Shown piece by piece: positions 28 to 47,776 of a stretch of 64,000 nucleotides of DNA. Location: the NCBI GenBank assembly GCA_048013815.1, contig CM106586.1, positions 16,678,001-16,742,000 on the forward strand. Reading direction: 5' to 3'. This DNA comes from Setoptus koraiensis. Lineage: Eukaryota; Animalia; Arthropoda. A model generated the notes under the pieces. The model was not told where the DNA came from. It worked only from the letters and a program-made list of their open reading frames with translations, and ran no database searches. The position numbers and the translations under genes are program-made. The stretch's first letter is position 1, and the number at the start of each line of letters is the position of its first letter.

Positions 28-218
28 CGGGCGTCGAGAAACCTAGACCTGAGTATCATGACAGCTTCGCATGTGCTCTGTTTCAGCTGTACTTGTATTG
101 AATTAAATTTTTTCTGTATTATCATGACACAACGGTCTATTTCCATGCATGATATGGGCCGTATTCTACTGTGTTCCATTAGTAGATTTCTTACATGTGA
201 GGTAAATTCCTGTACAGA
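28..218 (-). CDS. exd: extradenticle/PBX internal coding exon ('exon 3', PBC-B domain up to the start of the homeodomain); gene continues left of the window
   Basis: Not in the ORF track. The reverse strand reads [64 protein letters not shown], matching PBX/Exd [58 protein letters not shown]. Acceptor is ccaacAG (220-219) and donor is CG|GTAAGT (27-22). Length is 191 nt (phase 0 to phase 2), the same as the corresponding vertebrate PBX1 exon as I recall it. Confidence 0.97.
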
Positions 219-6036: not shown

Positions 6037-6042
6037 ACTTGC
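6037..6042 (-). other. Non-canonical GC 5' splice site (GC-AG intron 219-6042)
   Basis: AACCAG|GCAAGT lies at the conserved KYEQ|ACNEF PBX junction. It joins in frame to SVQEF. The nearby GT 4 nt downstream would break the frame. Confidence 0.85.
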
Positions 6043-6299
6043 CTGGTTATATTTCTCGTATTCGTTGTGATAAACGTTTCTAATTTGGGAAAGTTTGGCT
6101 TTGTAATCAGAATTCTCTATAACTCCTTCGCTGGGCGACACTTGACCGCTCACGGGCACCGCTAAGGCCACCGCGGCCGTATTGATGGGATTGCCCCTGC
6201 TGTCCAGAGTGGAAACTCCCTCGGCGGCGAGCATATTGTCTAGGCGTTGTAGTTGCATATCGGGCGGTTCCTCTTCGTGTTGGTTGCGAATACTTAGGC
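6043..6299 (-). CDS. exd: extradenticle/PBX coding exon 2 (end of PBC-A, linker, start of PBC-B)
   Basis: (G)LSIRNQHEEEPPDMQLQRLDNMLAAEGV...IENSDYKAKLSQIRNVYHNEYEKYNQ matches Exd [28 protein letters not shown]...[26 protein letters not shown]. Acceptor is aatgacAG (6301-6300), phase 1 start; donor is CAG|GCAAGT. Length is 257 nt (2 + 85 codons). Confidence 0.96.
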
Positions 6300-27876: not shown

Positions 27877-29324
27877 CATCGCATGTTGTGCTGTGTGTCG
27901 GGCTGTCAGTGTGACAGGCGGCCGGCGAGAGTCAGAAGTGGCATCGGCCATATATAACCGGGCATTAAATTCAAATCCATCATCGCAACAACAACAACAA
28001 CAGCAACAACAACAACCACCACGACCACTCATTAGACTTATCAATAATCAAGTGAGTCATCCCATTGATGCTCACAACTTGTCAGCTCACAACTTGTCAG
28101 CTGACAACATGAATAGCTGACAACGTGAATAGCTGACAACGTGAATAGCAACATTGTTGACTGACTCACCTGATTGAGTGCATATAAATCAACGTGACAG
28201 CTCAACAGCTGACGCCATGACACGATGACATAATTGGCCGGTCGCGGCAAATAAACAACAACCACAAGACCGTTCGATCCCGCGCGCCCCCCTTGCTCGA
28301 CACACACGCACGCACACAAGGTCAAGGGCGCAACGTGCAAACAGTTGTAAACAGTGATTTATAACTATAACAGACACATGTAACAACGACGCGCTGAGCT
28401 GGGGGCGGGCAGGCAGGCGATAAACAAGCGCGCGGGGTCAATGATTTATGAATGGAAATGATAGATGATGCGCACAGTGTGCGCGCACTGTGCTGCTGCT
28501 GCTGCCGTTGCTGCTGTTGCTGTGCCAGTTGTTGGCACCACTGTTAATAAATGTATCACCGCTATCATCATCATTACACACTCTCGTTGCTCATTAATCT
28601 CCTTCAACTTCAACTTGTCCATTGGCAACCGCGCTCGTCGGCTGGCACATTGTCGGTTTGCGGCGCTGTGCCGCGCAAGTCGGCACAGTTATGGTTAGCG
28701 GTGGTGACAGTGGCTAAGTGTTGCGTAAGTGTTTTTTGGCTGCGCCCAACTGTTGTGTGTGTGCGTGATAATGGCAAACATCATCAATTATTGCGCAACG
28801 CCACGTTATTGCCTAGGTGACAGATAGACGGGCACGGGCGACAACAATGGGCGCGCTGCTGGGTGTTACAAGTGACAGCCGACAGCCACAGCTGATTTGA
28901 CAATAGTTTTGTTGTCAAAGGTCGCCTGTCGTATGTCAAACGTCGACTCACCGTCACAGTGACAGAGCGGCACGCACACCGTTGGCCGGCCACCGCGATG
29001 ACACAACCGTAATCAGCGGGTCGGGTTGCGGTCGGTCGGTGGTCGGGTCGCCGTGGGTCGGTTGCCGGGTTGCGGTCGGTCGGTCGTCTGGTTGCCCGTC
29101 GGTCCGGTGAGCCAATCATCGCCACGATGACCGGACACTGTCATGTGATAGTTGCCAGACACGAGCGGCGACTCGGCCCGAGCGGATCAACAAGTGCGCG
29201 CACTAATTAGCGCGCCATTAGCGCGCGATTACCTGTGCGACTACCTGTGCGACTAGCTGTGCGCAACGAGCGCCCAATCAGTAACCAATCAGTAACCAAT
29301 CAGTAAGCAATGGGCGATACTCAC

Positions 29325-29574
29325 CTATTCTGTCTTTGAGCTCGCACAAGACGCTGTAGAGGCTCGGGGTCATGGGGTGCTCTTGCAGTTGGTGCTTGAT
29401 GAGTCTGTTGACGTGACAATTGGGCTCGTTGTCTATTTGCAGCATCTCGTCTAACAGCTGATGGATGTCGCGCTTCATGGTGGCCGCTATATTATTATGA
29501 TGGCTGGCACTATTATTGTGATTTTGACTGTGATTTTGATTACTATTATTCGCTAATGACACTGCGGCCAGCAT
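29325..29574 (-). CDS. exd: extradenticle alternative first coding exon 1B (PBC-A N-terminal part)
   Basis: MLAAVSLANNSNQN...MKRDIHQLLDEMLQIDNEPNCHVNRLIKHQLQEHPMTPSLYSVLCELKDRI(G) resembles PBX [49 protein letters not shown]. Donor is ATAG|GTGAGTAT (phase 1), compatible with the phase-1 start of exon 2. The start could instead be the internal ATG of MKRDI. Confidence 0.88.
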
Positions 29575-30497
29575 CTCACGTGTGTTCGGCGCGACAGCCG
29601 CCAACACGCCAACACGCCAACACGCTAATACGCTAATACGCTAATACGCTAATGAGTCTAATGAGTCTAACGAGTCTGATGAATGACGCTGATTGATTAT
29701 GTTGTTCACTGCAAATCTGGCCCTTTTATTGCTGACGATTTTATGGCCGTCGGCCGGTCAAGCGACTGGCGCGATTGTCGGATTTGGGCGATTCGGCGGA
29801 TTTGGGCGATTCGAGATTCGCGATTCACGACGAGCGGAACAGGGCGAGTGGCGCGAATTGGGCGAGTGGCGCGAACTGGGGCGAATTGGGCGAATTGGGC
29901 GATGGGCACGGAATGCAAACACGATGATTGATGCTTCACTTGACTTGATTTATTTATATTACAACTCTCACACAAGCCGATGATTTATTGTTTTTTGACA
30001 CTGGCCGCGATTGTCGCCGTGAGCTGCGCCGATGAGCACTGACTGGCCGCCGCTGCACCGACTGCGAGACGGTACGAGATTGACGATCGGCGTCAAAAAT
30101 TGACGAACTGCCTGCGAACTGCGCCGAATGTGCGCCGTGCGTGTGTACTTGACAGTGCGCGCCAACAACAATGGCTTCTCTGTCAGAGAGTCTCTGTCAG
30201 AGTCTCTGTCAGAGAGTGGCCGTCAGAGAATGGCCGTCAGAGTCGCTGGCCGCTTCTTGGCGTTCGCTGTCAGACGGCGCTGCTAGAAGGCAGCGCTGTC
30301 AGTCTAACAGTCCAACAGCAGTCAGTCCAACAGCGAACAGTGTGTGTGTGTGTGCGCCGAAGAGGCTTCTTTTTGGACGCTTCTGTGCCACACAATCCGC
30401 GGTCCGCCGGCAGTTGGCGCGCCGGCCCGTCAGTCAGTGAGCGCGACAGCCAGTCACTATTAATAATAATATTCTTTGTGCCACCATTTAAACTCCA

Positions 30498-30524
30498 CCC
30501 AAAACGCAAGTCTGCGCATGTCGA
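30498..30524 (-). promoter_or_regulatory. 27-bp element upstream of exd exon 1B (copy B)
   Basis: CCCAAAACGCaaGTCTGCGCATGTCGA is 25/27 identical to 42131-42157 and contains a TGCGCATG (NRF1/EWG-like) core. Function is inferred. Confidence 0.6.
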
Positions 30525-30789
30525 CCGGGCCAAATCAATTCATCTTTTACAACGCTGCCCATTGGCCATCTTGGCCGCGGGCTTCTCGCCTTGTCGCTTG
30601 CTCGCCCGCTTCTCCGGCTTCTCGAGCCACTGGCTGCGGCCACCCGACGGCGCCGGGCAGCGCCGAACGGAGACTGGACCAAGGCTGGCCGCAGCTCGGG
30701 CCGGCTCACAAGACAATGTCAGACAATGGCCAACAGCTAATTCATTGATCCCTTAATCGGCCTAAACCGAGCCAATCGTTTACCGTTAC

Positions 30790-30890
30790 CAAAACGCCGC
30801 ACAAACGCCGCACCAACGCCGCACGAACGGATAAACGCCGCACGAACGGATAAACGCCGCACGAACGGATAAACGCTGCATGAACGGATA
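30790..30890. repeat. 20-nt minisatellite (AAACGCCGCACGAACGGATA-like)
   Basis: About 3-4 copies plus partial copies. Confidence 0.8.
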
Positions 30891-31148
30891 ATAAACGGAC
30901 AAAACTAAATAATTGCGCCTGGCCGCCAACAGCCCACTGCAGACTGGGCGACACAGTCGCACTGCGACACAATGTCACACACCTTCGCCAATCATTGGCG
31001 GCCAATGCCAACAACAACGCGCACGACAGCTGACTGCAAGACGCTGACTTGTGAAATCAAATCGCCAGACTCTGAAAATCAGAGTCTCTGATTGAGAGTG
31101 TGATTGTCGGACTGGTGCCCAGGTCTGCAAACAACAGCGACACCTCGT

Positions 31149-31158
31149 CTGTCAATCA
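31149..31158 (-). promoter_or_regulatory. Perfect PBX-MEIS/PREP (Exd-Hth) decamer TGATTGACAG
   Basis: The plus strand reads CTGTCAATCA, about 1.6 kb upstream of the exon 1B ATG. Confidence 0.4.
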
Positions 31159-31880
31159 TCTGTCAGCGGCCCTATCAGCGTGATGGCGAGTTAAATTGTC
31201 ACCCTCGCCCGGGTTACATCATTGCACACACATCGTGAGCATGGACGAATCGACTCGAACATTGCCAGTCGATTTTGGGCATGTCGAGCATTTTGGGCAT
31301 TGTGACTGACAATTTGTGAGCACTGTGAATCACAATCTGTGAGTATTTTGGGCATTTTGAGCGGTGCGACCGGTGTGAGCAGTGCGACCGGTGCGAGCGG
31401 GCATAGGCACCGAGGCGGGTTTGCGCTCGGGGCCGGGGCACCGGCAAACCCGTGGCGGGCACTCACAAGTTGTGAGTCACAAGTCGGTAGCGAGTCAATA
31501 GCTAACAGGTAGGTACGCGTTGCTGATGATAGTTGTCAGCTGGAAGCAGCTGTCAACTGTCATCTGTCATGTGTCAGTTGGCACTAATTCAATAGCGACT
31601 GTTGAATTGGACCGGCATTTGGCCGACACTGACTGTCGATGGCGCTGTCAGGCCAACGCCGTCGACGGTGCCCCGACATGCATTGCTAACTGCGCACCTT
31701 TTGTTTGTTCGATCTTCGACTGACAACAAACTGAGACTGTGAGCAAACATTGTCTACGCAAATATTGTAGTACGTGTTTGGCGAGCTACAGTCACTCATT
31801 TATATATTGAGTGATATCGTGCGTGATACTGTGAGCGATTATTCACTTCAATATCGCGAGCGAATACTTATACCGTCCCC

Positions 31881-31957
31881 ATAATAATAATAATATTAAT
31901 AATATTAATTACAATTATTATAATTATTAATATTAATAATAATAATATTAATAATAT
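31881..31957. repeat. Almost pure A/T island of ATA/TAT/ATT units
   Basis: About 77 bp with a single C, just upstream of the PLA2 ATG. Confidence 0.9.
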
Positions 31958-31979
31958 AGCCCATAATTAATTAATCATC

Positions 31980-33287
31980 ATGATGCTCTTATTTGTGTGC
32001 CTGTTACTGTTATTGCCGGGCCAACGCGACGCCAGCACCAGTGACGCCGACGTGACAAGCCAAGACGACAGCAACAACCACAACAACAACAACAGCAACA
32101 GAACACTGTCTATGCCATTGTTGCTGACAGACGAACAAATAGCCAGTTTAGTGGCCGATTATCACAGCGAGAATAGTAGCGTTTTACTGGCCAAATGTGA
32201 CAAGACTTTCGCCTATGTCAAGTACCAAACTGTGCCAAATGACAATCACGACACCACCACCACCAACAACAACAACAATGCCGCCGACCAGTGGACCGAT
32301 GAGTCGGCGGCCCGCTCCCTGTTCACAATCAACGTGTCGCCCCTGGAACAGCTGATCAGGCCCCACATCAGCAACAACAACAACAATATCAAAAACAACG
32401 ACAACATCAACAGCGACAACAACGCCAATTGGACAACAACAACAACAACAAGTGCGATGGGCACACTCCGTTTGAGGTCGTCGTTTATTGGCACAAACAG
32501 TGACAGCACCAACACCAACAGGCTGCAACTGATACCGTTAGAGCGGGTGTTGGGCAACAATGCGCAAATTGTCGATTGTTACCTGGTCGACATAAACAAA
32601 CGGCCCCAGGAAATGCGCGAAATTGAGCGTTTTGTCAACAGGAGCAGCGAAACAATTGGCTTCGAGCAAATGATGACGCTCATGGTGAAATGTCGCCAGG
32701 TTCAATTGGATCAAATTGACAACAACGCGCACTTTGAGCACAATCTCACCAGAGCCGACAGCGGCGGTGACGACGATTATTCAGCCACACCAATCACAGA
32801 GGACGAATTGACCACTCTGGCGGGCGCCGTCACAACTACCGAACAACCAACAACTGGCCAGCAGCAGCAGCAGCCGACTAGCACAAGCGCCCCCCGACTT
32901 CCGGTCGGCGGCGCTGACAACATGTCAGCGACGACTGAGCGCCAGACGCTCACGTTTGGCATTGCGCCGGGAACGTTGTGGTGCGGTCTGGGCGACCGGG
33001 CCGCCGGCTACCGGCAGCTGGGCGAGGAGCGACAAGTGGACGCTTGTTGTCGGTTGCACGACCACTGTCCCGTGCGGCTGAAACCGTTCACCTTTGACTA
33101 CGGCCTCAACAATTGGTCAGTGTACACGCGCAGCCACTGCAAGTGCGACGTGGACCTCGACGAGTGCCTGCAGGCCGCAAAATCAAACATGGCCCAGCTG
33201 ATCAGAATGATCTATTTCAAGCTCGTGGGCACGCAGTGCATCGAGCTGGACAGCGACTCGGCAGCCGCTGGCCCGGCGGCGCGCTGA
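31980..33287 (+). CDS. Secreted phospholipase A2, group III (bee-venom-like family), single exon, 435 aa
   Basis: Hydrophobic N-terminus MMLLFVCLLLLLPG and an N/T/Q-rich pro-region. The C-terminal domain IAPGTLWCGLGD...DACCRLHDHCP...RSHCKCDVDLDECL has the Ca-binding loop (WCGxG), the catalytic His-Asp (HD) and the HCxCD motif. AATAAA at 33532-33537. Confidence 0.93.
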   Translation: MMLLFVCLLLLLPGQRDASTSDADVTSQDDSNNHNNNNSNRTLSMPLLLTDEQIASLVADYHSENSSVLLAKCDKTFAYVKYQTVPNDNHDTTTTNNNNNAADQWTDESAARSLFTINVSPLEQLIRPHISNNNNNIKNNDNINSDNNANWTTTTTTSAMGTLRLRSSFIGTNSDSTNTNRLQLIPLERVLGNNAQIVDCYLVDINKRPQEMREIERFVNRSSETIGFEQMMTLMVKCRQVQLDQIDNNAHFEHNLTRADSGGDDDYSATPITEDELTTLAGAVTTTEQPTTGQQQQQPTSTSAPRLPVGGADNMSATTERQTLTFGIAPGTLWCGLGDRAAGYRQLGEERQVDACCRLHDHCPVRLKPFTFDYGLNNWSVYTRSHCKCDVDLDECLQAAKSNMAQLIRMIYFKLVGTQCIELDSDSAAAGPAAR

Positions 33288-33531
33288 GCGCGCCCTCTCG
33301 CCGCTTTCTCAGTGGTCGGGTCTGGAAATGGTCGGGTCTGGAAATGGTCGGGACCCGACCCTGGCGAGCCCCATCTCACCATTCATATGTGCGGATATAT
33401 AATGTCCGCGTCGGGCCGCTGCGGGCCGATGACTGGATGCGACCAGCCGTCTGTTCGAAACCGGAAATTCTCAGTCATTCAATGTCAAACGGCGCACAGT
33501 CGCCGAGTCAATCATTTTATCGGCACAGCAC

Positions 33532-33537
33532 AATAAA
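33532..33537 (+). terminator. Candidate poly(A) signal for the PLA2 gene
   Basis: AATAAA about 245 nt after the TGA. Confidence 0.5.
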
Positions 33538-36500
33538 AGCTTTTTATCCCCTGCTCACCTCGCGCACTGCTCACTCGATACACTGCCCACTCGATACACT
33601 GCTCACACCACTCGATAGCACGTAATTACTGCGTAAGTTACGTAACGCAACACGGTTCGCACACTGTCCGCCGGCACTCACAGCCTGTGAGCCACAGGCG
33701 AGTGCCACGAGCAACTGTTCGCGTGCCTGCGCCGCGTCCGGCCCACAGCCAACGGTGACGGCGTTGCCACCAGCGGCCAGCTGACTCGCCCACTGGGTGC
33801 GCAATGGCTCGCGCTGGGCCCGTTGGGCGCGCTGGTTTGCGCACAGGTGAGCCGGCACCGGTACCACTGACCGACACACACGGGCAACACTGACCGACAC
33901 ACACACGGGCGACACTGACCGACACACACACGGGCGACACGGGCAGCGTGACAGCGAGCTGGCGTGCAGTTGCGTCATCGCTGATTGTCGGCCCGTCTCT
34001 GGCCGACAATCAGCGCGTCTGTGGCGGGCGTGTGAGGGCCGCAGCACACATAGCAGACGGGCAGCGCAACGTCACGTCACGTCAATCAGCGCCGGCTCAC
34101 GGATATGGAAGGGCGTCGTCGCGTTTGTCGTCGCCGATGCGCTCCCATTTGGCGCTCGCCGCCAATGACAACACCGATCGAATTGACGCTGGCCAGTCGG
34201 TCGGTCGGTCGGTCGGCCCGTCGGCCGGCCCCAATCGCGAGTAAATCACCGGCCGGCCGACAGTGTGTGTGTGCGGGTCGTGCCCGTCGCACGGGCACCA
34301 GCGGGCCCAGTCATCATCGCGAGCGGGCCCAGTCATCGTCGCAATATGTGCTGGCCGCTGCGTACCGCTGGCTGTTGCCGTCGGGCCCGTCACAGGGCGA
34401 CAAGGCGGCGCTGCGCGCCGCCGACGAGCTCATTAGTTTGCCGGAACAGAGCCTATATGGGGCAGACAGTGATGCCGAGCTGATGTTTGCGCTCCGGCGA
34501 CTTGTTTGCAGCGAGCCGAGTGCGTGTGTGCGTTAGTTGGGGCCCGCTCTGGGGCCGCGCGCACACACACACACACACACAACTGCCCGCTGCGGCGGAC
34601 ATGCGGACGGGGCGCGCTGCAGTTTGTGGAGATGTTACTGCTGCCGCTATACGGGCGCGCTATATCCGCGCCATATCCGCGCCATATCCGCGCCATATCC
34701 GCGCTATATCCGCAAACTGCAGCCCGCGAATGGGCGACTGCGGCGAATGGGCGAATGGGCGAATGGGCGACTGCGGCGAATGGGCGACTGCAGCGAATTG
34801 GGCGATGACGCGCGCGCTCGCCGAAAGAATCATTGTCGTGTAAATTTGCCAATGATTAGTTGCACAAACACGCGCTGGCGTGTTTGCACACAATGCCGTC
34901 TGGCGTGTTTGTCGCTCTCTCCGGCTGGCTCGCGCGCTGTTGCGTAACGCGGCCGAGCGGCCAAAAGTCAGCGAGCGAGAGAGCCGAACAAAGGCAATCG
35001 AACGCGTTGTCGTGGGCGCTTGTTTCATCAAATCAAATCAAGTCGCGAGTGGAGTCGCGAGCCGAGTCGCGGATTCGCGCCCATCGGGCCGCCGCCGACC
35101 TTCGCCGGCAGAATTAAATCGGAGCCAGCGGCTGGCGCTGATGCTCGCCAGCGACACACCGCGAGCGAGCGACGGGCGGCGAGCGGCACTCGCCAAGAGC
35201 GCGCCCGCCGTCGCTCGAGCGGCGGCGGGCGCAGCGGCCAACGGGCGACGTAATCAGTGCGCGGGTTGTTGATTGCAGCACGGGCCGCCGACTGGCTGTC
35301 GCGATGGCGCTGCAGCCCGCGGGCCGGCGGCGGAGCGAGCGTTTGAGTGAATAGATGAGTGAGCATGAGAGTCGCGAATCTCTCTAGGCTCTCGCTCTGT
35401 AGGCTCGCTCTGTCACTGGCTCTCCCAGGGATTGCGCGTCGGGGATAGCGCGCCGGGGATTGCGCGCCGGGCTGGCGCGTCGGGCTTGCGAGGGAGCGCG
35501 ATTGTGCGAGGGCGCGTGTGGCGCCATTCAAGCAAGAGCGACTTTCTTGCCAATTCCGCGTCCAAATGCCCATTGCGTGTGTGTGTGGCAGCCAACGAGC
35601 AAAGGGGGACACCCCGGTCGGTGTGTGCGTCGGGCGGTTGCAGCGTCGGATTGGTTGCGGCAGCGCCGCGCAAAACAACAAAAGCAGAAACAAAGATGAA
35701 GGGCCCCCTCCTCTGGGGAGAATGGCTTTGTGCAAGTGAGCAGCGCTGGGCGCTCTCACAGCTCGCTGCCAGCCCGAGCCCGAGCGCCAGCCCGAGCCCG
35801 AGCGCCAGCCCGAGCCCGAGCGCCAGCGACAAGCCGGGCGCCCACGACGCCAACAAGCCGAGCGCCGACGAAACAAATGGATACACAAATGGAAAACAAA
35901 AGTAGTTCTCGCAGCGCCTCGAATCAAATCGAATCGAATGGCGGCATCGGTGCACGAGCCGACGAGTTGATGGATACAAATGGAAAGCAAAATGCGAACG
36001 CACACACATACATCACTCCGGCCGGGCTGCCATATCACTACTATATCACTATAGGAGTGGCTTCTTTGGGGCCCCCTTCGCTATCGAGCGCGCCGCTGCT
36101 CGGGCCACCGCACTTGATAGCGGTTTGATTAGTATTAGAGGCCGGGCGATAATAGCTACTCTCGGCATTGCAGCACGCGCGCGCGCTCGCGCGGGCCCCA
36201 TCGCGCGGCCTCTAATGGCTGTCTAAGGGCGGCACATCAACGGCGCCGCCAGCACTCGTCGTGCAATTGCTCGTCGGGCGCCCCACTTCTCCTTTCTACT
36301 TGAGTGCGATTCTTTTTCACTTTCGTCGTGACTCACTACTGGCGACACTGGCGGCACCTGCTACTCGCTGCTCGCTGCCGCCGCAAAATCGCTGGCTCGC
36401 CCCGGAGTCGGCGGCTCGCTTCGGAGTCGGCGGCTCGCTGGGAACGGGAGCCCGCGATTCCGCGCCGCGATGGCCGAGATTTGGCACCATCGGCACACAA

Positions 36501-39500
36501 ACAAACAAAGCGACCTGCATCCCACGGCGCCCCCATGCTCGCCGTCGGCGAATCACACCATGTGATCGAGCCCGCTGACGAGCCCCGCCGACGAGCGCCG
36601 CTGATCAGCGCGCTCCGACCAGCGGGCCCCGATCAGTGCTGGCCGCATGTGCACGAGAGAGTGTGTGTGTGTGCACCGTGTGATGTATGGGGCGACCGGG
36701 GCCAATTGTTTGCTGGGGCCCCGGCTGCGTTGGCGCGCTGATGCGTTGCGGGCGCGCTTGCAGCGCGGATATTTGTTAAACTTGAACACACACACACACA
36801 CCGTGAGCTTGTGCCGCGAGCGCGCGCTCTTAATGACGACGAATGGTCTTGCTGGTGCTCGTGCAAGGATGACGATTAGCGGGATCAGCGCTAATGGAGG
36901 CGCCCACGCTGCTGGCATGCAATAATCGTCGTGTTCGCCCTGGCGCCGCCGAACAATTTCCGCGCGCGCGGGCCCCACTTGTGCCGCTCGTCTAGTCGGC
37001 TCGTCTATGCGGCTCGTACCGCCGCCGCCGCCACGGCCGGCCCCCACATGACTGCGCGCCCAGACCGTGCCGGCCAGCCCGAGCTGTTATGTTGTAACTG
37101 GGGCCGGGCCGCTCCAGCGCGGCGCTCGGACGCTTGCAGCGCCGAAACAAATAGCGGCCAAGTGGCCAAATCATTGCGATGCTGAGGACGATTGATCTCA
37201 ATTTGGCGGCTGGCACAACGAGCGGCGACTAGCGTTCGAACACTGTGCGCTTGAAATGCATACAAACGAACGCTACAAACAGTGGATACAAACAGCGATA
37301 GCTGGCACAGAGCGAAAAGTAGACGGATAAGTAGACACAGGCAGAGAATGGAGAGAAGACGAAGAATTTGATTGTGGAATGATGATGATTATCTCATTCG
37401 CTACACACACACACACACACTCATACAAGCGGCTCAATAGCGACTGGCAACTGTGGCATTTAGAAGCCTGGCGAGAGAACACACAACTCAAACAGTTCGA
37501 GCGCTCGGTTCGCAGCCTCGGTTCGCGGTTCGCACTCGAACGTTTGAACGTTCGAACGTCCGAACGTTCGAGCGTTCGAACAGCAAGGTGAGCCACAGGC
37601 AAAGGCAAACATCAAATTCGGCGCTGGAACGTGGAAGGCCGAAGACTATCGAATGTGTGTGTGTGCGCAGATAATAAGAAGAGATCGCTGTCTCCTACTG
37701 GCTCCTACAACCACCGACTACCACTGCAACCACCGACTACCACTGCGACCACTAACAAACAGCAACAGCCAACAACAAACAGGTAAAACAGGCACCAATT
37801 TCAGTGTTTGTGTGCTGCTAAACTCTGCAAATCAACACAATGTTGATCATCATCATCAACTGCATGATGTGTGTTCGAAGTTCGAGCCAACGAGCCACTA
37901 AGCACTTTGGCCGAACCAAACGACTGCTGCTGCTTCTCAGTTCGCAGCTCGGCTCGTTTTGGCTCGGCTCGTTTTGGCTCGGCTCGGCGCGGCTCAGCCG
38001 GGCCGGCCGGTGAGCCCGTCGACCAAGTTGAGCATCGTCAGCGTGGTCACGTCGCTGCTGCTTCTAAGAACTGACCATTGCACACACACACACACTGTGT
38101 AGCTTGCAAATGGCGTAATGGCGCTCGAGATCATGATGTTGTTCTCTGGCTTAGCGGCGGCGCTCAGGTGAGATGATGATGATGCTCGGGTCGTAGCATC
38201 ATGCCATTTCACCTGACTGGCGCTCGCCAGTGATGATCTGACGGACTTGTCTGACGGTGTGAGCGAGCATCTGCTGCCGCTCCGGCCGTCGCCAATACGC
38301 GCCAGCCCAATTCTGACGCTGAGTCAAGAGAGATCAGTTAAAATGAGAGGTAAAAAAGGGAATGAGAATCAAAATTAGAATTGGCAGACCATTCTCTGTC
38401 CATTCTTGAGGTCAATTTAAACAACACACACACACACACACGCTTAGCCAGAGAAGGCAAATTACGATGATAATGAACAATAAATGATGAAAAGTGAATA
38501 CACACACAGCATGCGCATATTTATATTTATACTCTGTATGAATGTTGCTCGGCCGGCCAAGGCCAGCCCTCTGACCAAGCCAGCTCCGGCGAAACTTTCG
38601 AAGCGTCTCTCGCTCTGCCAGAGACTCTCTGGGCAACCATTAAAGCTCAATATCATTCAATTTGCAGAGCATGAGACCATTACAGCGACGCGCAACGCTG
38701 CCAGCCGAGCCAAGCCAACTAACAGCAAAGCTAAAGTAGCAACAAGTGAACAGGTGAACAATTAATATTGATGGTGATTTTGCTGTTGCTGTTGATGTTG
38801 CTGTTGCACTGGTGCTGTTAGTTGGCGGTGAATAAAGATAAGAATATGTTAATATTTCGACGCCATTCAACGCACCGACGCAATAGCAACGACACATCAT
38901 GGCGGCGGCAACAACAACAACAACAACAACATTGCTCGCCACCAGCCAGACCCGAGCGCGCCCCCACCCCGCATTCGCTGCATATTACATATATCTGTCT
39001 GTTTATGTTTATTTGCATCTCTTTTTGCTGGCTCGTCTGGCGAATATCTCTCTTTGTTTGTATCGTTGTTGGCTAGCGCACCACTCTCAAATCGCAGCTA
39101 TTGTCGGCCATTCGAAATCGTCGGTATTGGCCTATTTTGGGCGGTACAACTCTCGACCGACCGACAGTCGGCATGAGCGGCAACATCTCCAACCCGGGAT
39201 GCACCGGCCTACAAAACGCTACAAAAACATGGAGGGTCCAGCATTGCGCGAGACAATTACGGAAATTATTTATCAGAATGAACGTGCATAATAATAATAA
39301 TAGTGGCACCGCTACAACCTTCACTGTCCACCATGTGTGATCCAGATCAATCATTCTGCTTCATAAAAATCATCAGCTCTCAAGTGATCACGTCAATGGG
39401 TGATGATTGAGCGCCTGATGCGATGTCAGCCAGTGTGTTGTCTTGTTTGCACTGATGCGAAATAAAGATAATTTAATCAGTAATCACTCAATGATTAGCT

Positions 39501-41416
39501 AATAGTTAATTCTTTCGCTCTCACTTAGTTCTTGCTCAATTCAATCGTATGAGCCCCAAACGCTTGCAACAACCAGGTAGACATACGGCAGTTATCATTA
39601 TTCAATCATACCACACTTGAGCCACTTGCAAAACACACTGGCCATATAAATACTGGCCAGGTAGTTTTAAAAATAGCTGCTTATAAAAATGATAATTTTT
39701 AGTTTGTGTCTACAGTAAGTGTGAAACAAGTATGGCACACACAACACACATACTCTTCTTATCAAGAGAGCTCATTGACAACTGTATCTAATTAGGACCA
39801 CTTTTGCCAGACTCATCACTCTCTGGGATGTTTGAGTCTCGCTGTTTGTGTGTGGGCACTTCGCGAATAACAAAATACTCATACAAGACAGCTCAATCAA
39901 ATCAGACATCTTGTTGGTCCGACAATTGGACGGACAGCTGTTGTCTCAACACTCACATTAGTTAATTGTGCAATGTCAGTGGATATGTTAGGGGACCCAA
40001 CGAGATGTTGTGTCGCCATTATTTTCTACGGACAACTGATTGTATCAGTAATGTTGCTTGCTTCGAATACAGTCACATCTGATGGGACACACGATTGGCG
40101 GCCAATATTGTGTGAGAGTCGGCACTGACTGACAATCAAAATGCTGACTATCAAAATAATTTTGTCTGCTTTTAAAGGCGATCGAGTATCCGAATTTACT
40201 ATACCAAAAGCGTAAATTAGAACGTTTCGACGTTTCGCCAATCCAGGTAAAGGATTGACCATTCGCCCTCGTGAACCAACAGGCAAATCTGCCTGGCGGA
40301 TCTGCCAAATAGGGCCCTACTGTATCTTGGGAGTATCTCCAAGCAAGCTACAACAACTGAAACAATGATCACTTTTTCTCGTTTCTCACAAACGTAGCAT
40401 ATGAATTCGCTCATCGAGGACAAGGGTTTGCGTGAAATCATCTACGAGTTGGTGATTTGACATAAACTCGTGTTATGATAGACCAATGATGAATTCTTTG
40501 CTGACGAAAATAAAGTAGATTCGGATATTCAAATTGGTTTCAATCACTCGAACTAGCGATTTCTGTGACAGAATGGCACATTGATCATTTTTCTGAGGCA
40601 CCAAAACAAACTTGATTGAATTTTCCAGCTAGATTTTGCTCAGCGATGGCATATAGCTAATATGTTGGCTAAGCGGGATGAATCTATATAAATATGCCGG
40701 GCACACATACACAACAGAAAATCATTTATTTGAGGTGTGGCAAACGCTCACGGGGACCCGTGGGGAACCTCGGAATTCAATCTACTGAATGTTAGCTGGC
40801 CTCGTGTGACCAGCTAACATACAATAAATTTGACGAAACTGGTGGTGCTAATTAATAATAATTGGGCGCCCAATTGCATAAGTCAACTCTTTTCTGTGGT
40901 GAGTGCCATTTTGTCATGTGTATGAAAAATGATGTTGCTTGTTGTTGGAGCAACAACCGCCTGATCACAATTAATCACAAAAAGACGATGATCCTTTTGG
41001 ATATAATTTGAACATTTGGACAATTTTAAGTGATGAGCGAATTCGCATTTGCTTGACAGGATCGTCTGGTGCTGACACAAATTATTCGAATTTGCATCAC
41101 GACGCTTGTGTAATTTTGCACGATTGTGGACGTATAATTTTGTACGATTGTGGACGTATAATTTTGTAGGATTGTGGACGTATGATTCTGCACGATTACG
41201 ATATAATTTGAGACGATCATAACACAATGTTGTACGATGGTAATATATTTTTATTGAATTTGCCACGATTTTGCACGTTCGACATGATCGAGTGTTGCAA
41301 CTAGTCATGGGGCAAATACGTATCAAAATAGTGCTCGCGTTGATAACAAGTTGATCAACTGGATTATTGGCGATAATCAGCTGATTATCGTTTGTCGTAT
41401 TGGTAATGATACTCAC

Positions 41417-41624
41417 CTACTCTATCCTTGATTTCGCTCAACACCGCGAACAGTGTTGGCTTCATAGGGTGTTCATTGAGTTGAAGTTTGATTGCTTGAG
41501 CTCTATCCAAATTTGCCTCACTGCTTATCTCAAGCAATTCTTCTAACATTTGCTCAATATTTCGTCTATGTGGTGAATGATTGGTTGTCAATGAAACGGC
41601 GGCCACTGTGGCCATGGTTAACAT
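41417..41624 (-). CDS. exd: extradenticle alternative first coding exon 1A (PBC-A N-terminal part)
   Basis: MLTMATVAAVSLTTNHSPHRRNIEQMLEELLEISSEANLDRAQAIKLQLNEHPMKPTLFAVLSEIKDRV(G). Donor is GTAG|GTGAGTAT (phase 1). Length is 208 nt (69 codons + 1). The ATG is at 41624 or 41615. Confidence 0.88.
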
Positions 41625-42130
41625 TTAAATGGGATGCTTATTCTTGCTTGTTTGTGGCCGTTGTTGTCGCGTTGTTGTTGTTGTTGTTGCTGTTAATTTA
41701 TCGAGAATTTGCGAATTTATCTTCTTCGTTCTCTCGTTGTCTTGGTGATAATATCTGGCCGATACAGACAAATATAATGCACACCAATTATAATAATAAT
41801 TATAGTAATAATAAGTCGTTGTTGTCTTCTCTATTCACATGATATCATTTGTTGTTGTTGTATTTGCATTCTTTTTTCTTTTTTCTCTTCTTCTTCTCAC
41901 AACAACATCATCATTTCACGCAAACGACCAAATGTGAGTGTGTGTGTGTGTGTGTGTGTGCGTTTGTGTGTGTGTGTGTGTGTGCGTGTGTGTGTGCGTT
42001 CTCTCGCTCAATCTCTCAATTCGACACTGTTCGCTCCGTTCGATCGTTCGTTTGTCCGTTTGTTAGTTCGACGGCCTTCCAACTATTGGTTTGTCTGTTA
42101 TCAACACACACACGCTCAATAATAATACTG

Positions 42131-42157
42131 CCCAAAACGCCCGTCTGCGCATGTCGA
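42131..42157 (-). promoter_or_regulatory. 27-bp element upstream of exd exon 1A (copy A)
   Basis: CCCAAAACGCccGTCTGCGCATGTCGA, in the same orientation relative to its exon as copy B. Confidence 0.6.
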
Positions 42158-43031
42158 GGGGGAAATTCAAACATGTAAACAAACCAAAATTCAACCTTCT
42201 AGCGCTCGCGTGGTGCCATCTATTGCACGCTTTCACAACCACTGCACAACCTGATCAGCTGATCGGCCTCACTACAACCATACCACTGTATCATACAGTC
42301 AGTAATACAGAGTCTGTATTACAGACTCTGTGGGCCTACCATAACGCACCCCTGCACATATTGTTGATCGCCGATAGGGCGCTTTCATCTCGGCACCATT
42401 GAGTCGGTACCAATGGGTCAATACTATTCAATAGTAACTATTGTGTGTGCTTGTTAGCCTGATGGAGGCCGCTGACAAGTGGCACAGTTGAGCGGCAAAT
42501 CGTGATACACAAAACAAAGAAACAGTTGAAAACATTCTGTCGTGACACCACGTTCGCTGCCCTGCATCTCTGGCGGCTACATGTGCCTCTAGCGGACAAT
42601 AAACTGACGCACGTGATCAAGATAAAGATAACAACATGACAGAGTGTCAGGGAACTGCAATCAAGTTGACAGCGGCCCGATATTCTAACCGATTGCATCC
42701 AGCTCGATATGATTTATCCTTATTATTCAACGCAATCAACTAGATCGCACCAACATGAGAACATTTTTTGGAAAACACTCCAATACTGGAGCTTCAAAGT
42801 GAAACCAACTCTAATCTACTTCTAATCACACTCCTCTGTGTACTGTGTGTCAAAGAATTTTTATGATGGAACTTCGTAGACGAACAAATGTAGTAAAAAT
42901 TCATGCCAACCAATCTCTGACAATCTTGTGAGTCTCTGAAAGGAGCTATTTGTCACACTTGTGACAATGCCCTCGCTTCTGGTATAACTTTACATTAAAT
43001 CGCATTATGAACGCAAAAAGTTGAAACTTTT

Positions 43032-43037
43032 CACGTG
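43032..43037. promoter_or_regulatory. E-box CACGTG upstream of ESF1 (candidate Myc/Max site)
   Basis: TCACGTGA lies about 270 bp before the ESF1 ATG, with a second CACGTG at 42610-42615. Ribosome-biogenesis genes are typical Myc targets (established); function here is inferred. Confidence 0.35.
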
Positions 43038-43309
43038 ACACTGCGCGCTTGAGAATTCATTCCAATGCGTCGTCAGCGCCTCTAGCGGAATGCCGTGAAC
43101 ATCGGAAAATCTCCACGCGGTCTACAGCACGCGTGTGTTTATACAAGTGCCAAACATTTTCTGCATGGAATTTAGCCGGCAATCTACAGACTATCAGTAG
43201 GATCATCTCTTACCATTTATTGTATCATATATCTCATATCCTTCATATTTAAATTAAAATTTGTTAATTATTATTGATTAAAATTGTTAAGAGTTTGCTA
43301 TTCAACAAA

Positions 43310-44956
43310 ATGGAGGACGAACGATTTAAACAGGTGCTCAAGGACCCCAGGTTCAAGAATATGCGCCAGAGAAAAGTCAAGATAGACAAGAGATTCGCGC
43401 CCATGTTCAAGGATAAACAATTCAAAACTGACGACAATTTACAAAGATTTTATCAGTTAGATAAAGACGAAGATGAGGACGAAGACGAAGATGAAGATGA
43501 AGAGGAGAACGAGGATGAAGAGGTATCATCCTCTTCAGATGAATCATCATCCTCAGACGAAGAGGACGAGACAAATGAAGTTCAGTACGATTGGGCTGCT
43601 CTTGACAAAGATGCAAAACCAACAGAGGAGGCAACTAGACGTTTGGCTATCTGCAATTTCGACTGGGATTATCTTGAAGCTACAGACATTTTCGTTCTTA
43701 TCAACTCATTTAAACCTCCCAAAAGTGTCAAAGTCTATCTATCCGACTTTGGAAAAGAAAGATTAGAAGAAGAAGAAAAGAAGGGACCTAAAGAACTCAT
43801 CGAAATGCCTAGAATTGATGAGGAAGACGAGGAGGATCGCGACCTAGATGATCTGAAGGAAAAACTTCAAGTCGTTAAAAAGAAAAGTACTAATCCAGTC
43901 TGTCAGTACGAAGATGCAGATGAAATGACCGAAGAGCAAAGAGCAGTGGCTGAGCGAATCAGGGTCTATCAGCTCAACAGATTGAAATATTATTACGCTG
44001 TAGTCGAAATGGATAGTGTAGAAAGTGCCGATCACGTATATAAAGAATTAGATGGATTAGAATACGAAGGCAGCTCGACTGCTTTAGATCTTAGGTTTAT
44101 ACCCGACGATATGGAATTTGAAGACTCTCGCATGAAGAGCGAATGCCATGCAATGCCTGATTTGGCATCATATGAAGCTCCCGTATTCATAAACACAGCC
44201 TTACAGCAAACTAAAGTCAATTTGACTTGGGATAGTACCAATCACAGAAGGAAGGGTAAACTACACAAAACGTATACCATGATGGAGTTGGAGAAGGGCG
44301 ACCTTGAGGCTTATCTGGCCTCAGACTCTGAAAGCGACAATCAAGATGAGATGCTTGAAGATTTGTCGGGTGAAGAAGGTGAACCCAAAATGAACAAATA
44401 TAAACGTTTATTGCAGAAGTTGCAAGAGGAGGAAGAACAGAAAGACAAGATAGACTTAGAAGTTAACTTTTCAGAAGAGGAAGACAACAAAGGAAAAGTG
44501 AAAGATGAAGATGGAAGTGATGATCATGAAAATGATGAAAGCGATGATGATGACGGAAGCGATGACGACGATGGAAGCGATGACGACGATGGAAGCGATG
44601 ACGACAATGAAAGGGATGATGATGTTGAAAGCGATACTCCCGTTAAAACCGATGATCCTATTCAGAGTGATGATGATGATAGAGGCCGCGGTTCCAAGGG
44701 TCGCAAATCTAAGCGTCGTCATGCTAAAGCTCGCAACACCAAAGGTGGCGATGACGAAGATGAAGGCTTGAAATTGTTGCTTCTCGATACAGACGCGAAA
44801 AAAGAATCCGAATTTCAGTTCAATCCCGAGGATGATCGTTTCAAGGCTGTTTATGATTCCCACCTTTACAATATTGACCCTTCAGATGCAAATTTCAAAA
44901 GAACAAAGGCATACGAGGAGTTAGCTAAGAGAAAGCGTCGAAAGACTTTATTATAA
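43310..44956 (+). CDS. ESF1: ESF1 homolog (18S rRNA processing factor), single exon, 548 aa
   Basis: N-terminal DPRF...KVKIDKRF..MF; TRRLAICNFDWD; YQLNRLKYYYAVVE; DGLEYEGSSTALDLRFIPDD; acidic tracts; C-terminal NUC153-like DDRFKAVYDSHLYNIDPSDANFKRTK. The first ATG is at 43310 (the ORF track starts at an upstream TTG). Confidence 0.95.
   Translation: MEDERFKQVLKDPRFKNMRQRKVKIDKRFAPMFKDKQFKTDDNLQRFYQLDKDEDEDEDEDEDEEENEDEEVSSSSDESSSSDEEDETNEVQYDWAALDKDAKPTEEATRRLAICNFDWDYLEATDIFVLINSFKPPKSVKVYLSDFGKERLEEEEKKGPKELIEMPRIDEEDEEDRDLDDLKEKLQVVKKKSTNPVCQYEDADEMTEEQRAVAERIRVYQLNRLKYYYAVVEMDSVESADHVYKELDGLEYEGSSTALDLRFIPDDMEFEDSRMKSECHAMPDLASYEAPVFINTALQQTKVNLTWDSTNHRRKGKLHKTYTMMELEKGDLEAYLASDSESDNQDEMLEDLSGEEGEPKMNKYKRLLQKLQEEEEQKDKIDLEVNFSEEEDNKGKVKDEDGSDDHENDESDDDDGSDDDDGSDDDDGSDDDNERDDDVESDTPVKTDDPIQSDDDDRGRGSKGRKSKRRHAKARNTKGGDDEDEGLKLLLLDTDAKKESEFQFNPEDDRFKAVYDSHLYNIDPSDANFKRTKAYEELAKRKRRKTLL
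44947..44952 (-). terminator. Candidate poly(A) signal AATAAA for RTEL1, inside the last ESF1 codons
   Basis: Plus-strand TTTATT within ACT TTA TTA TAA; it begins 5 nt past the RTEL1 stop. Confidence 0.5.
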
Positions 44957-47776
44957 CTAAAACCTTTCCTGCTTCCTTGAGGCCGAATTAAAAAGCAAAG
45001 GTTTAAAATCCTTCATTTTAAGTTTAACATCACATTTACCACATTGATCTTTTCTTTTCAACAAACCAATCCAACAATCACTACAGGATACTCGAGAGCA
45101 TGCACAATTCGATCGTAAGGGCGTTACAGCTTTCCCTAAACAAATGGAGCACTTGTACGGGGCAGGCCGACTGGCCTCTGACAGCTGGTCGAGTATGGAA
45201 TAGTTGGGGTCGGATGCTGAAGTAGCCAAGCTCGAAGGTTTAGACCATTTCGTCTTCTTCCTTGCAAATATATTGAGACTTCTTGGTTGAGAGAGTATTG
45301 AATTTGATGTTGTCGATGTGGTTGCCACGCGTTCATCACTTGGAGTAGTTCCCGATTGGTCCTCAGGAGTTGATGATGATGGACATAGGCTATCGAAGGC
45401 ACTAGATGTGGTTACATTGGCCGATGAACTTTGTTGGCTATTTTGTGATTGTTGCTGTCTTACTTTTTCTCGGGCTTTCTCAGCAGTCTGTCTATCAACA
45501 GTGTAGCTTGCAACCATGGCGTTCTCTTTTGCTTTAAAATTAGTCGGACGTATCACCTCTTCCGGAACAACAGATTTTGGACGGCTAGTAGAAGCAGTAG
45601 AGTTATCTATTTGGAATGCACCCAACTGCTCGCCGGATGTCACAGACGGTTCAGGTAATGCCAAACCATGCGACTTAAAAAATGATACTACAGTCCTTTC
45701 AGCTTCCAGGAAGGTAATCTCTTTATCAGAATAGTGTGGCTTTATCCAATTCGAAAAACTGTCACTTGCACTTCTGAAACGTGGATCACATAATATTACT
45801 AAACCGAAATCATCTTTGCTTCGAATGACTCTGCCTATTGTTTGATTCAAGGCTCTCTTCATTTGCAAACTATACCAATGCTGCCCGTTCATAGCATTTC
45901 TAGAATTTTTGTTCCTCTGATCTAGATACTTTCTTTTCATTTGTACCCTAGGATCAGCTATCCCGGGGAAGGGTGGTCCCGTTAATATCACCGATCTACA
46001 ATAGTCATCGTTCAAATTAACTCCCTCTGATAATTTTCCGCGACAAACTCCAAAGAAAACAGCTCCCGTAGAATTCTGTGTGTCTATGACGCGTTTAAAT
46101 GCCGCGATATCCGAGGCGAAAGTAGTTTTGGATTTAGGCTCTATGAAAAGTTGCTTACAAGCTAACATGCTTTTCCAAATTGTTGTTCGCTTCCAAGATT
46201 CTATCACAGAATACATGAGGTAATATGATTGAAAGAAGACTACGGTTCCACAGGGGAGTATTTTGAATAGTCTAAGCAGTGTTGATCCAATAGCTCTATG
46301 ATAGGTGGGCTTCTTCGATTCATTGAAGTCAGAAACGAGAGGGTAATTTTCAGGAGATCTACCTAATGTAATGAATTCAAGTTGACCTCTACTGATAACA
46401 TGAGGAGATTCCAGTGTGACTCCAATGTTAGTCTCTAGTTCGTCTTTATATGGTCCTAGAGGTGCTAATGTTCCTGAGGTGATAACTAATGATCTAATAT
46501 TGGCTGCACTCCTCAAGCGCCTTAAGCCAATAGCTGGGCTAAGACACCATAAATGAAATGTCCAATCCTTGGGCGGTTGATTGTCATGCGGTCTTTTGCC
46601 GTTTGTTGATTCATCAGACTTGAGTCTCTCCAAATAGGCTCGATAATATTGGCTGAAAGTTAATTTGTGTTCATTCATGCGGACAAGACTGAGGCAATCA
46701 TCGGGAAAGGCAAGACTAACAAAACTGCTGAACAGTTCCAATGATGTAACAAAATTAGCAACTTGTGTTGGATTTTGTACACCGGCAGCTAATAGAAACG
46801 CCGACATGGTATCGAGAGTTTCAACAAGTCTATCAGATACACTATATGTTATTCCACATGATTCTAACAGGGAGTAGAATTGTTCAGTTGAGCATTCTCT
46901 ATTAAATTCACCAAACGACCTGAGAGTAGATTGTTGCATATTTAGTGATGCAACTCGTACCTCTTCAAGTCTATCCGAGGTCAATTTCTCGATCATCTCC
47001 AAAATAGGATTTGGTTTTTGCTCCTTTTCTTTTTTGCCACCCTTTTCATTCCCGTCAGCATCGAAAAGATCGTCATTCTTTGGATTGTAACCAGTGCGAG
47101 TTAGGCCATGTCTCTGATAATTTTCCACATCGCTCAGTTTTTTGGGCAGCTTAAGCACACAATCTTGAATAGTCTTTAGCGACGACTCTGTTAGTTGGCC
47201 TGATACACAATCTTCTAGGATATTTTCTATGTTGTGTGCCTCGTCGAAGATAATAATGGAGTCCTCTAGTTTCAGGAGTTGATTCTTTCTCAATGATGGA
47301 TCCAAGATGTAATTGTATGGCGTAAAGATGATGGTTGCTTTGGTTTCGGCTAATTTTCTACTAGCAAAATATGGACAACATTGATTGGTCCTGCCGAAGC
47401 TAATTAGATCCTCTATGTCTAGAACATTGTTGTGATCCATAGCCTGTAGCTTATTTTCGTAATTTGAATAAAATTGGCACGAGTTTTGTGCAACGGCATT
47501 CCTACAGGCCCTATTTATGAGGTAATTTCCGGATTGCTCGCGTACTTGCTCATTGAGGCACATTTGTTCGCGACCGCCCAACACTACACCCGGTACTCTT
47601 GCGTAGGCGGTCCTCTTCATTTCTTTGGCCGCTTGGGCCAATTGTGCATGGGTCCTACTACTGTAATATATGTTTCCCGTTTTTTCCACCCTGTTTTCTT
47701 TCCAAGCTAACGAAGAACACAATAGAGCTAGAGTTTTACCTGTTCCAGTGGGGCTCTCCAGCAATGCGTTGGTTTT
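44957..47776 (-). CDS. RTEL1: RTEL1 Fe-S DEAH helicase, exon 2 (helicase core plus C-terminal C4C4 RING-like finger)
   Basis: KTNALLESPTGTGKTLALLCSSLAW (Walker A), IYYSSRTHAQL, Fe-S cysteines (REQMC, RAC, SCQFY, CCPYF), IIFDEAHN, GVCRGKLSEG, QTIGRVIRSKDDFG, and C-terminal CSIC..CAC..CSDC..CGKC. Acceptor is CTGACcaaacgacAG (47778-47777). Confidence 0.94.
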   Translation of the reverse strand, partial: KTNALLESPTGTGKTLALLCSSLAWKENRVEKTGNIYYSSRTHAQLAQAAKEMKRTAYARVPGVVLGGREQMCLNEQVREQSGNYLINRACRNAVAQNSCQFYSNYENKLQAMDHNNVLDIEDLISFGRTNQCCPYFASRKLAETKATIIFTPYNYILDPSLRKNQLLKLEDSIIIFDEAHNIENILEDCVSGQLTESSLKTIQDCVLKLPKKLSDVENYQRHGLTRTGYNPKNDDLFDADGNEKGGKKEKEQKPNPILEMIEKLTSDRLEEVRVASLNMQQSTLRSFGEFNRECSTEQFYSLLESCGITYSVSDRLVETLDTMSAFLLAAGVQNPTQVANFVTSLELFSSFVSLAFPDDCLSLVRMNEHKLTFSQYYRAYLERLKSDESTNGKRPHDNQPPKDWTFHLWCLSPAIGLRRLRSAANIRSLVITSGTLAPLGPYKDELETNIGVTLESPHVISRGQLEFITLGRSPENYPLVSDFNESKKPTYHRAIGSTLLRLFKILPCGTVVFFQSYYLMYSVIESWKRTTIWKSMLACKQLFIEPKSKTTFASDIAAFKRVIDTQNSTGAVFFGVCRGKLSEGVNLNDDYCRSVILTGPPFPGIADPRVQMKRKYLDQRNKNSRNAMNGQHWYSLQMKRALNQTIGRVIRSKDDFGLVILCDPRFRSASDSFSNWIKPHYSDKEITFLEAERTVVSFFKSHGLALPEPSVTSGEQLGAFQIDNSTASTSRPKSVVPEEVIRPTNFKAKENAMVASYTVDRQTAEKAREKVRQQQSQNSQQSSSANVTTSSAFDSLCPSSSTPEDQSGTTPSDERVATTSTTSNSILSQPRSLNIFARKKTKWSKPSSLATSASDPNYSILDQLSEASRPAPYKCSICLGKAVTPLRSNCACSRVSCSDCWIGLLKRKDQCGKCDVKLKMKDFKPLLFNSASRKQERF
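44987..44992 (+). terminator. Candidate poly(A) signal ATTAAA for ESF1, inside the RTEL1 coding sequence
   Basis: ATTAAA lies about 30 nt after the ESF1 stop and is antisense to RTEL1 codons TTT AAT. Confidence 0.45.

Follow-up and report, generated by a model that had tools for sequence, protein, structure and literature searches.

Two paralogous PBC-A first exons in extradenticle of Setoptus koraiensis, probably alternative and derived from an old duplication of the 5' end of the gene

Introduction

Can a single extradenticle gene produce two Exd proteins that differ only in the segment that binds the partner? Few animal transcription cofactors are as well conserved as the Exd/PBX proteins, and their PBC-A part decides pairing with Homothorax (Hth)/MEIS and entry into the nucleus. 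The question is raised by a stretch of 64,000 nucleotides of Setoptus koraiensis DNA (assembly GCA_048013815.1, contig CM106586.1, positions 16,678,001 to 16,742,000; hereafter the window), in which a first-pass annotation, made from the letters alone, had noticed two minus-strand exons that each begin with ATG and each encode a version of PBC-A. We analyzed this locus and conclude that it probably represents one extradenticle (exd) gene, of the PBC class of TALE homeobox genes, with an anciently duplicated 5' end and two alternative first exons. All positions below are those of the window.

Results

Two first coding exons precede a single set of downstream exons

The first of the two exons, exon 1A, lies at positions 41417–41624 of the minus strand, and is recognized by its open reading frame (ORF), its Pfam PBC match, words held by RNA-like runs, and predicted helices. 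Its start may be the ATG at 41624, which has a weak context, or the in-frame ATG at 41615 (ANNATGG context), and its last base, 41417, is followed by a GT donor at 41416–41415. Exon 1B, the faster-evolving of the two, lies on the same strand at 29325–29574 and is documented by its ORF, its Pfam PBC match, run contigs and predicted helices. It starts with the ATG at 29574, contains a further in-frame ATG at 29478 (context GCCACCATG), and ends with base 29325, directly followed by a GT donor at 29324–29323. Exon 1A encodes an N-terminal tail and PBC-A helices 1–3, and each of the two exons encodes the first 50 residues or so of the PBC domain. They have the N-terminus AAVSL in common, both finish with ...TAG|GTGAGTATC in phase 1, after the first base of a codon (G|GTGAGTATC), and their donors are identical over 10 bases. 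In-frame stops precede both exons, at 41625–41627 for exon 1A and near 29643 for exon 1B, approximately 23 codons before its ATG, so that 22 codons are open ahead of that ATG.

Downstream of both lie exon 2 (6043–6299, minus strand), which encodes the rest of PBC-A and the start of PBC-B and is identified by Pfam, tblastn, a contig junction and orthologous exons, and exon 3 (28–218, minus strand), identified by its Pfam match, which encodes the end of PBC-B. The acceptor AG of exon 2 is at 6301–6300; from 6299 the exon contributes GC, which completes a Gly codon, and continues with LSIRNQ. Exon 3 has the donor CG|GTAAGT and stops at ...FLDAR just before the homeodomain, which falls beyond the start of the window. 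The donor of exon 2 (6041–6043) is of the GC-AG type (CAG|GCAAGT) instead of GT; the frame into exon 3 (SVQEFTSHV...) fits only that site.

The Pfam PBC family (PF03792, gathering cut-off 25 bits) matched all four exons. Its positions 1–49 were matched by exon 1A alone (28.5 bits) and by exon 1B alone (25.8 bits), positions 51–120 by exon 2 (61 bits) and positions 134–181 by exon 3 (71 bits). The domain that defines a PBC-class TALE homeobox gene (Exd/PBX) is thus present along exons 1A, 1B, 2 and 3. When each first exon was compared with the window by tblastn, the other first exon was matched with 50% identity over 50 residues (E approximately 1e-14), and no third copy was found across the 64 kb. 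Likewise, tblastn found no second exon 2 or exon 3 in the window, including the 41 kb downstream of exon 1A. The locus therefore does not hold the two complete sets of coding exons that characterize the whole-gene exd paralogues of arachnopulmonates; it holds paralogous ATG-bearing exons with the same phase and equivalent donors, which is the configuration of a tandem-duplicated alternative first exon. Nor are these mutually exclusive internal exons, because both begin with an ATG and the ancestral N-terminus and have in-frame stops upstream. The first-pass annotation had described this anatomy correctly: the two minus-strand ATG exons with their AAVSL remnant, cores about 50% identical and a common phase-1 donor were recovered in the sequence and by tblastn, the single exon 2 and exon 3 were found as described, and the exon coordinates and junction positions (41417->6299 and 29325->6299) were exact on re-check.

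Exon 1B is joined to exon 2 in RNA

We placed Logan contigs of four public sequencing runs (X4, X5, X9 and X25) on positions 29100–30700. Run X4 is plainly DNA, with an even depth of 150–190 over exon, intron and upstream DNA, and run X5 is of low depth and DNA-like. Runs X9 and X25 each gave one contig on exon 1B and nothing on intron or upstream DNA across the 1.6 kb, and because only the exon is covered we consider that they behave as RNA runs. The X25 contig covers 29375–29618 with zero differences from the window, colinearly and with no joint, and shows that exon 1B is transcribed at least as far as 29618. The X9 contig (218 bases) covers 29324–29514 and then continues with 26 loose letters that do not fit the intron. 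These letters are the reverse complement of window positions 6298–6273, and the base placed at 29324 can just as well be read as the G of position 6299. The 26 letters are therefore exon 2, and the contig, which comprises exon 1B up to its donor followed by the first 27 bases of exon 2, shows the 29325->6299 junction of a spliced molecule. Two differences from the window are listed for this contig inside exon 1B, at 29419 and 29454, and neither changes the encoded residue. This proves directly that exon 1B is spliced to exon 2, at one of the two junctions that the first-pass annotation had named for a check in RNA.

Short tandem repeats with units of 8–11 bases lie on both sides of exon 1B, at 29230–29320 (downstream; ttactgattgg and cacaggtagtcg) and at 29590–29700 (upstream; gcgtattag, ggcgtgtt and tagactcat). 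The X4 and X5 assemblies break or carry indels within these repeats.

Words of RNA-like runs and a contig end point to use of exon 1A

For exon 1A, we sampled 31-base words of positions 41300–41800 in three RNA-like runs of the same study. The share of words held was 0.63 in X7, 0.44 in X8 and 0.41 in X9, approximately what exon 1A together with some 5' untranslated region would give. A second observation comes from the X9 contig described above, which terminates exactly 27 bases into exon 2. Logan contigs are built with a word size of 31, and the final 31-base word of this contig takes ATAG from the end of exon 1B and 27 bases from exon 2. Because exon 1A ends in GTAG, the next word (TAG plus 28 bases) would be common to the path from exon 1A into exon 2, and a 31-mer graph must therefore break at this point if both junctions are present. 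Two other causes of the contig end were considered and rejected: with unspliced RNA (CAG|exon 2) the break would come one base later, at 28 bases and not at 27, and a bubble caused by a single-nucleotide polymorphism (A/G in exon 1B) would also break it 30 bases upstream, where there is no such break. That the contig, at a depth of 5, should end at that exact base by chance is unlikely. Altogether, we infer that exon 1A is also spliced to exon 2; its transcript would run from 41417 into exon 2, reading GCCTAAGTATTCGC. Of the proposal that one exd gene has two alternative first exons, the 1B junction has thus been read, and the 1A junction is supported by the words of X7–X9 and by the contig break.

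Both first exons look constrained and their duplication is old

Over 50 aligned codons, exons 1A and 1B are identical at 0.66, 0.74 and 0.36 of first, second and third codon positions, respectively. The proportion of synonymous differences is 0.93, which is beyond saturation, dN (the nonsynonymous divergence) is 0.37, and overall DNA identity is 59%. The GC content of third codon positions is 0.40 in exon 1A and 0.76 in exon 1B and tracks local composition. We also ran a neutral simulation with substitutions only, in which an exon was counted as intact when it retained its ATG, 66 open codons and a GT donor. At 0.5 substitutions per site 1% of unconstrained exons remained intact, and at 1.0 this share fell to 0.08%. 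From the codon-position identities, the saturated synonymous sites and the intact reading frames, both first exons look constrained, which supports the earlier suggestion that selection has kept both copies open.

A tree of the exon cores, built with 21 PBX/Exd representatives, places 1A and 1B as sisters (support 98/94). Their common stem measures 0.62 and their individual branches 0.19 for 1A and 0.71 for 1B; exon 1B has thus changed approximately 4 times faster than exon 1A. Both also have the same one-residue insertion, and in place of the canonical motifs LNCHRM and KEK they carry the derived QLxEHPM and KDR. Identity over the exon to other PBX/Exd proteins is 33–50% for 1A and 22–36% for 1B. 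Because the two exons group on a long stem and their synonymous sites are saturated, the duplication is, judging from these comparisons, old and specific to this already divergent lineage.

The upstream DNA was probably duplicated with the exon

Upstream of each first exon we found a copy of a 27-base element, at 42131–42157 for exon 1A (approximately 0.5 kb from the ATG) and at 30498–30524 for exon 1B (approximately 0.9 kb from the ATG), both on the minus strand. The copies match each other at 25 of their 27 bases, and the window contains 2 matches, compared with 0 expected from 100 shuffles. A CA repeat is located approximately 150 bases beyond each element (41933–41999 and 30339–30357), and order and orientation are the same at both exons; the rest of the flanks cannot be aligned. 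The presence of element and repeat at both exons is consistent with upstream DNA having been part of the duplication and with the element being under selection at both copies. It is therefore probable that upstream or promoter DNA was duplicated along with the first exon, and the copied piece would have taken in at least 0.5–0.9 kb of DNA ahead of the first coding exon and all of that exon as far as the donor.

Exon 1A stands head-to-head with an ESF1-like gene (43274–44956, plus strand) across a gap of 1.66 kb, and exon 1B stands head-to-head with a PLA2-like gene across a gap of 2.4 kb; in each case the 27-base element lies in the middle of the gap. It is possible that the exd promoter at exon 1A belongs to a bidirectional housekeeping promoter (41615–43274). 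Each first exon probably has a promoter of its own. The earlier claim that a promoter plus first exon had been duplicated thus gains the shared element and CA repeat in its favor. Each copy would act as an alternative first exon, probably from its own promoter, that splices in the same phase to the shared exon 2.

Searches for orthologues of the two exons

A profile made from 1A and 1B was searched against 1.84 billion representative sequences and gave 140 PBX-like matches, none of them close to either exon and none with the EHPM motif (best match 52.7 bits). Orthologues of 1A and 1B are therefore either hidden inside canonical clusters of that collection or absent from it. A protein homologue search with exon 1B alone, bound by a length window and by a demand for exact words, yielded no candidate. 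The read-through ORFs of the two exons were absent from the protein collection by exact look-up, and scans of Joint Genome Institute metagenome contigs with a peptide pattern and with a degenerate DNA pattern gave nothing. A route through the PLA2-like gene yielded 6 homologues, and among the 5 contigs examined none was syntenic and none had an exd exon. Exon 2 does have orthologues in two related species, on a contig from a Logan run (L005; 97.8% DNA identity) and on contigs from ENA metagenomes (L003/L004; 81%). No first exon was found on these contigs, which are 0.65–1.0 kb long and end short of the first-exon region.

A stretch of 23–25 bases in intron 2 (5629–5653) is 100% identical in L005 and L003/L004, and the rest of the intron cannot be aligned. 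We consider this stretch a candidate splicing or enhancer element.

Weighing the use of one or both exons

Several points weigh against two alternative first exons. Of the two junctions with exon 2, the one read directly is that of exon 1B, and that of exon 1A we infer. The RNA-like contigs are shallow (2–5x), so that the contig end could be a coverage gap. Over 191 bases the X9 contig and the window disagree at 4, and the runs are labelled with another organism code (C); the source of the RNA is therefore the same or a very close species, though perhaps another strain. Support for the grouping of 1A with 1B could be inflated by long-branch attraction, although the shared one-residue insertion argues for this grouping. 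Finally, the protein, contig and metagenome searches described above provided no 1A or 1B orthologue from more distant relatives.

One alternative is that only one exon is productive and that the other is a transcribed relic not joined to exon 2, or gives a rare isoform that is functionless noise. The single junction read directly and the low depth of the RNA-like runs fit this explanation, and the long branch of exon 1B (0.71 against 0.19) could mean relaxed constraint. However, ATG, open frame and an identical donor have been kept in both exons despite synonymous saturation, codon positions 1 and 2 are far better kept than position 3, and the 27-base element has been kept upstream of both copies. 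Moreover, exon 1A is the closer of the two to the canonical form and has words in three RNA-like runs, and the 1B contig stops exactly at the word where the two paths are predicted to merge. We thus consider it quite unlikely that one exon does all the work, and likely that both first exons are used.

A second alternative is that exon 1A splices upstream of exon 1B, which would yield a protein with two N-terminal halves of PBC-A or make 1B an internal cassette. In its favor, both exons end in phase 1 and the frame is open for 22 codons ahead of the ATG of 1B. We nevertheless rejected it as highly improbable, since an in-frame stop lies about 23 codons before that ATG, the X25 contig runs colinearly over 29375–29618 with no joint, and exon 1B has retained an ATG and the ancestral AAVSL, which is what one expects of a first exon. 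Equally improbable, and rejected too, are two separate exd genes and an assembly chimera in which the 12 kb between the exons were misassembled, because the 64 kb contain no second exon 2 or 3, exon 1B is joined to exon 2 at 6299, the DNA run X4 tiles 29100–30700 as in the window, and a DNA identity of 59% excludes a collapsed or duplicated assembly artefact.

The predicted isoforms differ most in helix 2

With one exd gene and two alternative first exons, the two proteins would be identical from G-LSIRNQ onward and would differ in the N-terminal tail and PBC-A helices 1–3, a part that carries two of the three hydrophobic repeats by which PBX binds MEIS/PREP/Hth. AlphaFold2, run with shallow alignments, gave each exon a disordered tail followed by three helices whose positions correspond (residues 20–30, 36–47 and 52–65 in 1A; 37–49, 53–64 and 69–82 in 1B), with a predicted local distance difference test score of 73–92 in the core. 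By hand count, the two exons are identical at 6/11 residues of helix 1, 4/12 of helix 2 and 8/14 of helix 3.

In PBX1, the hydrophobic residues tied to PREP1/MEIS1 binding are I43, I/L46–47, I50, I53, L77, F78, V80, L81 and I84, and mutagenesis has shown that the 77–84 repeat (L77, V80, L81, I84) matters most and the 43–55 repeat less (PMC7545097). In our alignment, both exons retain these residues or have conservative substitutions for them: the helix 3 repeat reads LFAVLSEI in 1A and LYSVLCEL in 1B, and helix 1 follows the pattern I..(M/L)L..(L/M)L.I. Because the MEIS/PREP-binding positions are kept, both isoforms probably still bind Hth. Helix 2 has the near-universal LDxAQAxK in 1A and CHVNRLIK in 1B. 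K65 of PBX1, in this helix, cross-links intramolecularly to the homeodomain (PMC7545097). Based on this comparison, the isoforms may differ in intramolecular masking or in partner preference. The first-pass annotation, which had spoken of divergent cofactor-binding surfaces, was right as to the strong divergence of helix 2 in 1B and overstated the rest, given that the PREP1/MEIS1-binding hydrophobics are kept.

The N-terminus of PBX is thought to mask nuclear-localisation signals until MEIS or PREP binds. The likeliest difference between the isoforms would accordingly lie in how helix 2 packs against the homeodomain or a partner, and so in the Hth dependence of nuclear entry, and not in Hth binding as such. 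In its most specific form, this idea would make 1A and 1B Hth-dependent and Hth-independent forms of Exd, respectively, which we regard as rather unlikely. Exon 1A, which has the canonical helix 2 and shares its promoter region with a housekeeping gene, would yield the usual Exd, whose nuclear entry and activity need Homothorax. The 1B protein, in which LDxAQA has become CHVNRL, would not mask the homeodomain or its nuclear signals as 1A does, or would prefer another MEINOX partner, and its place would be in domains free of Hth, for example the distal ring of exd in the legs of arachnids. If this were true, partner dependence would have been split by subfunctionalising a Hox cofactor through the duplication of a promoter and one exon, and not of the whole gene.

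Discussion

The layout of the locus is in most respects that of Drosophila extradenticle and vertebrate PBX1–4. The PBC layout and the end and phase of the first exon (...IKEKT|G/V-LSIR) are the same, and the hydrophobic repeats (PBX1 43–55 and 77–84) are kept (PMC7545097). Unlike those genes, which have one PBC-A first coding exon, the gene described here has two that are paralogous and very divergent. No account of alternative PBC-A first exons in exd or PBX emerged from full-text literature searches, in agreement with the first-pass annotation, which knew of no such arrangement in Drosophila exd or vertebrate PBX.

Tandem alternative first exons, each with its own promoter and all joined to common downstream exons, are familiar from the clustered protocadherins and UGT1A. 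As in those genes, duplicated ATG-bearing 5' exons would here give a variable N-terminus and a constant remainder. The differences are that there are two variable exons, and that the variable part is the helical, partner-binding module of a transcription factor, whereas in protocadherins and UGT1A it is an extracellular or substrate-binding domain. The architecture is thus of a known kind and appears to be new for the PBC family.

Chelicerates offer another comparison. Spiders, scorpions and pseudoscorpions have exd-1/exd-2 and hth-1/hth-2 pairs that stem from whole-genome duplication (PMC11422720, PMC5513375), and the acariform mite Archegozetes is reported to have a single-copy exd that is expressed in a proximal domain overlapping hth and in a distal ring (PMC11422720). 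Whole-gene paralogues are the only source of two Exd proteins known so far in this group. Like exd-1/exd-2, the two first exons are predicted to provide two Exd proteins and with them room to divide expression domains. Unlike exd-1/exd-2, where the whole gene was doubled, the duplication here took in an upstream region and first exon only, and the homeodomain and PBC-B are therefore forced to stay identical between the isoforms. It would be a route to two Exd proteins without the gene duplication seen in spiders, and if the isoforms are deployed in different tissues, regulatory and protein subfunctionalisation would be tied together at one locus. Two old, selected versions of PBC-A on an otherwise identical protein also amount to a natural structure-function experiment, one that would mark the hydrophobic repeats as the residues of PBC-A that must stay and helix 2 as the part that can be rebuilt.

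A further case of variation within PBC-A comes from an ENA metagenome contig (L006, positions 1–566; ERZ23486757, scaffold_1156418). It carries two tandem PBX/Exd mini-exons of 75 bases, 53 bases apart, each of which encodes 25 residues and has a ttcag acceptor and a gtaag donor. Their sequence makes them candidates for mutually exclusive exons that span the main MEIS-binding helix. As at our locus, one gene would have alternative versions of PBC-A helix 3, and the same Phe/Tyr swap occurs (LFSVL/LYSIL in L006; LFAVL in 1A and LYSVL in 1B). In contrast to exons 1A and 1B, the L006 mini-exons are internal, have acceptors, cover helix 3 only and are far less diverged.

Neighboring genes

The PLA2-like gene (31980–33287, plus strand) is intronless and lies within exd, in the intron that separates exons 1A and 1B. 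Its ORF of 435 residues has a signal-peptide-like start, N-rich low-complexity stretches and a C-terminal group-III PLA2 domain (PF05826, 115 bits), and its nearest database homologue is 39% identical. On the other side of the ESF1-like gene, an RTEL1-like helicase ORF (44957–47764, minus strand) abuts the ESF1-like stop.

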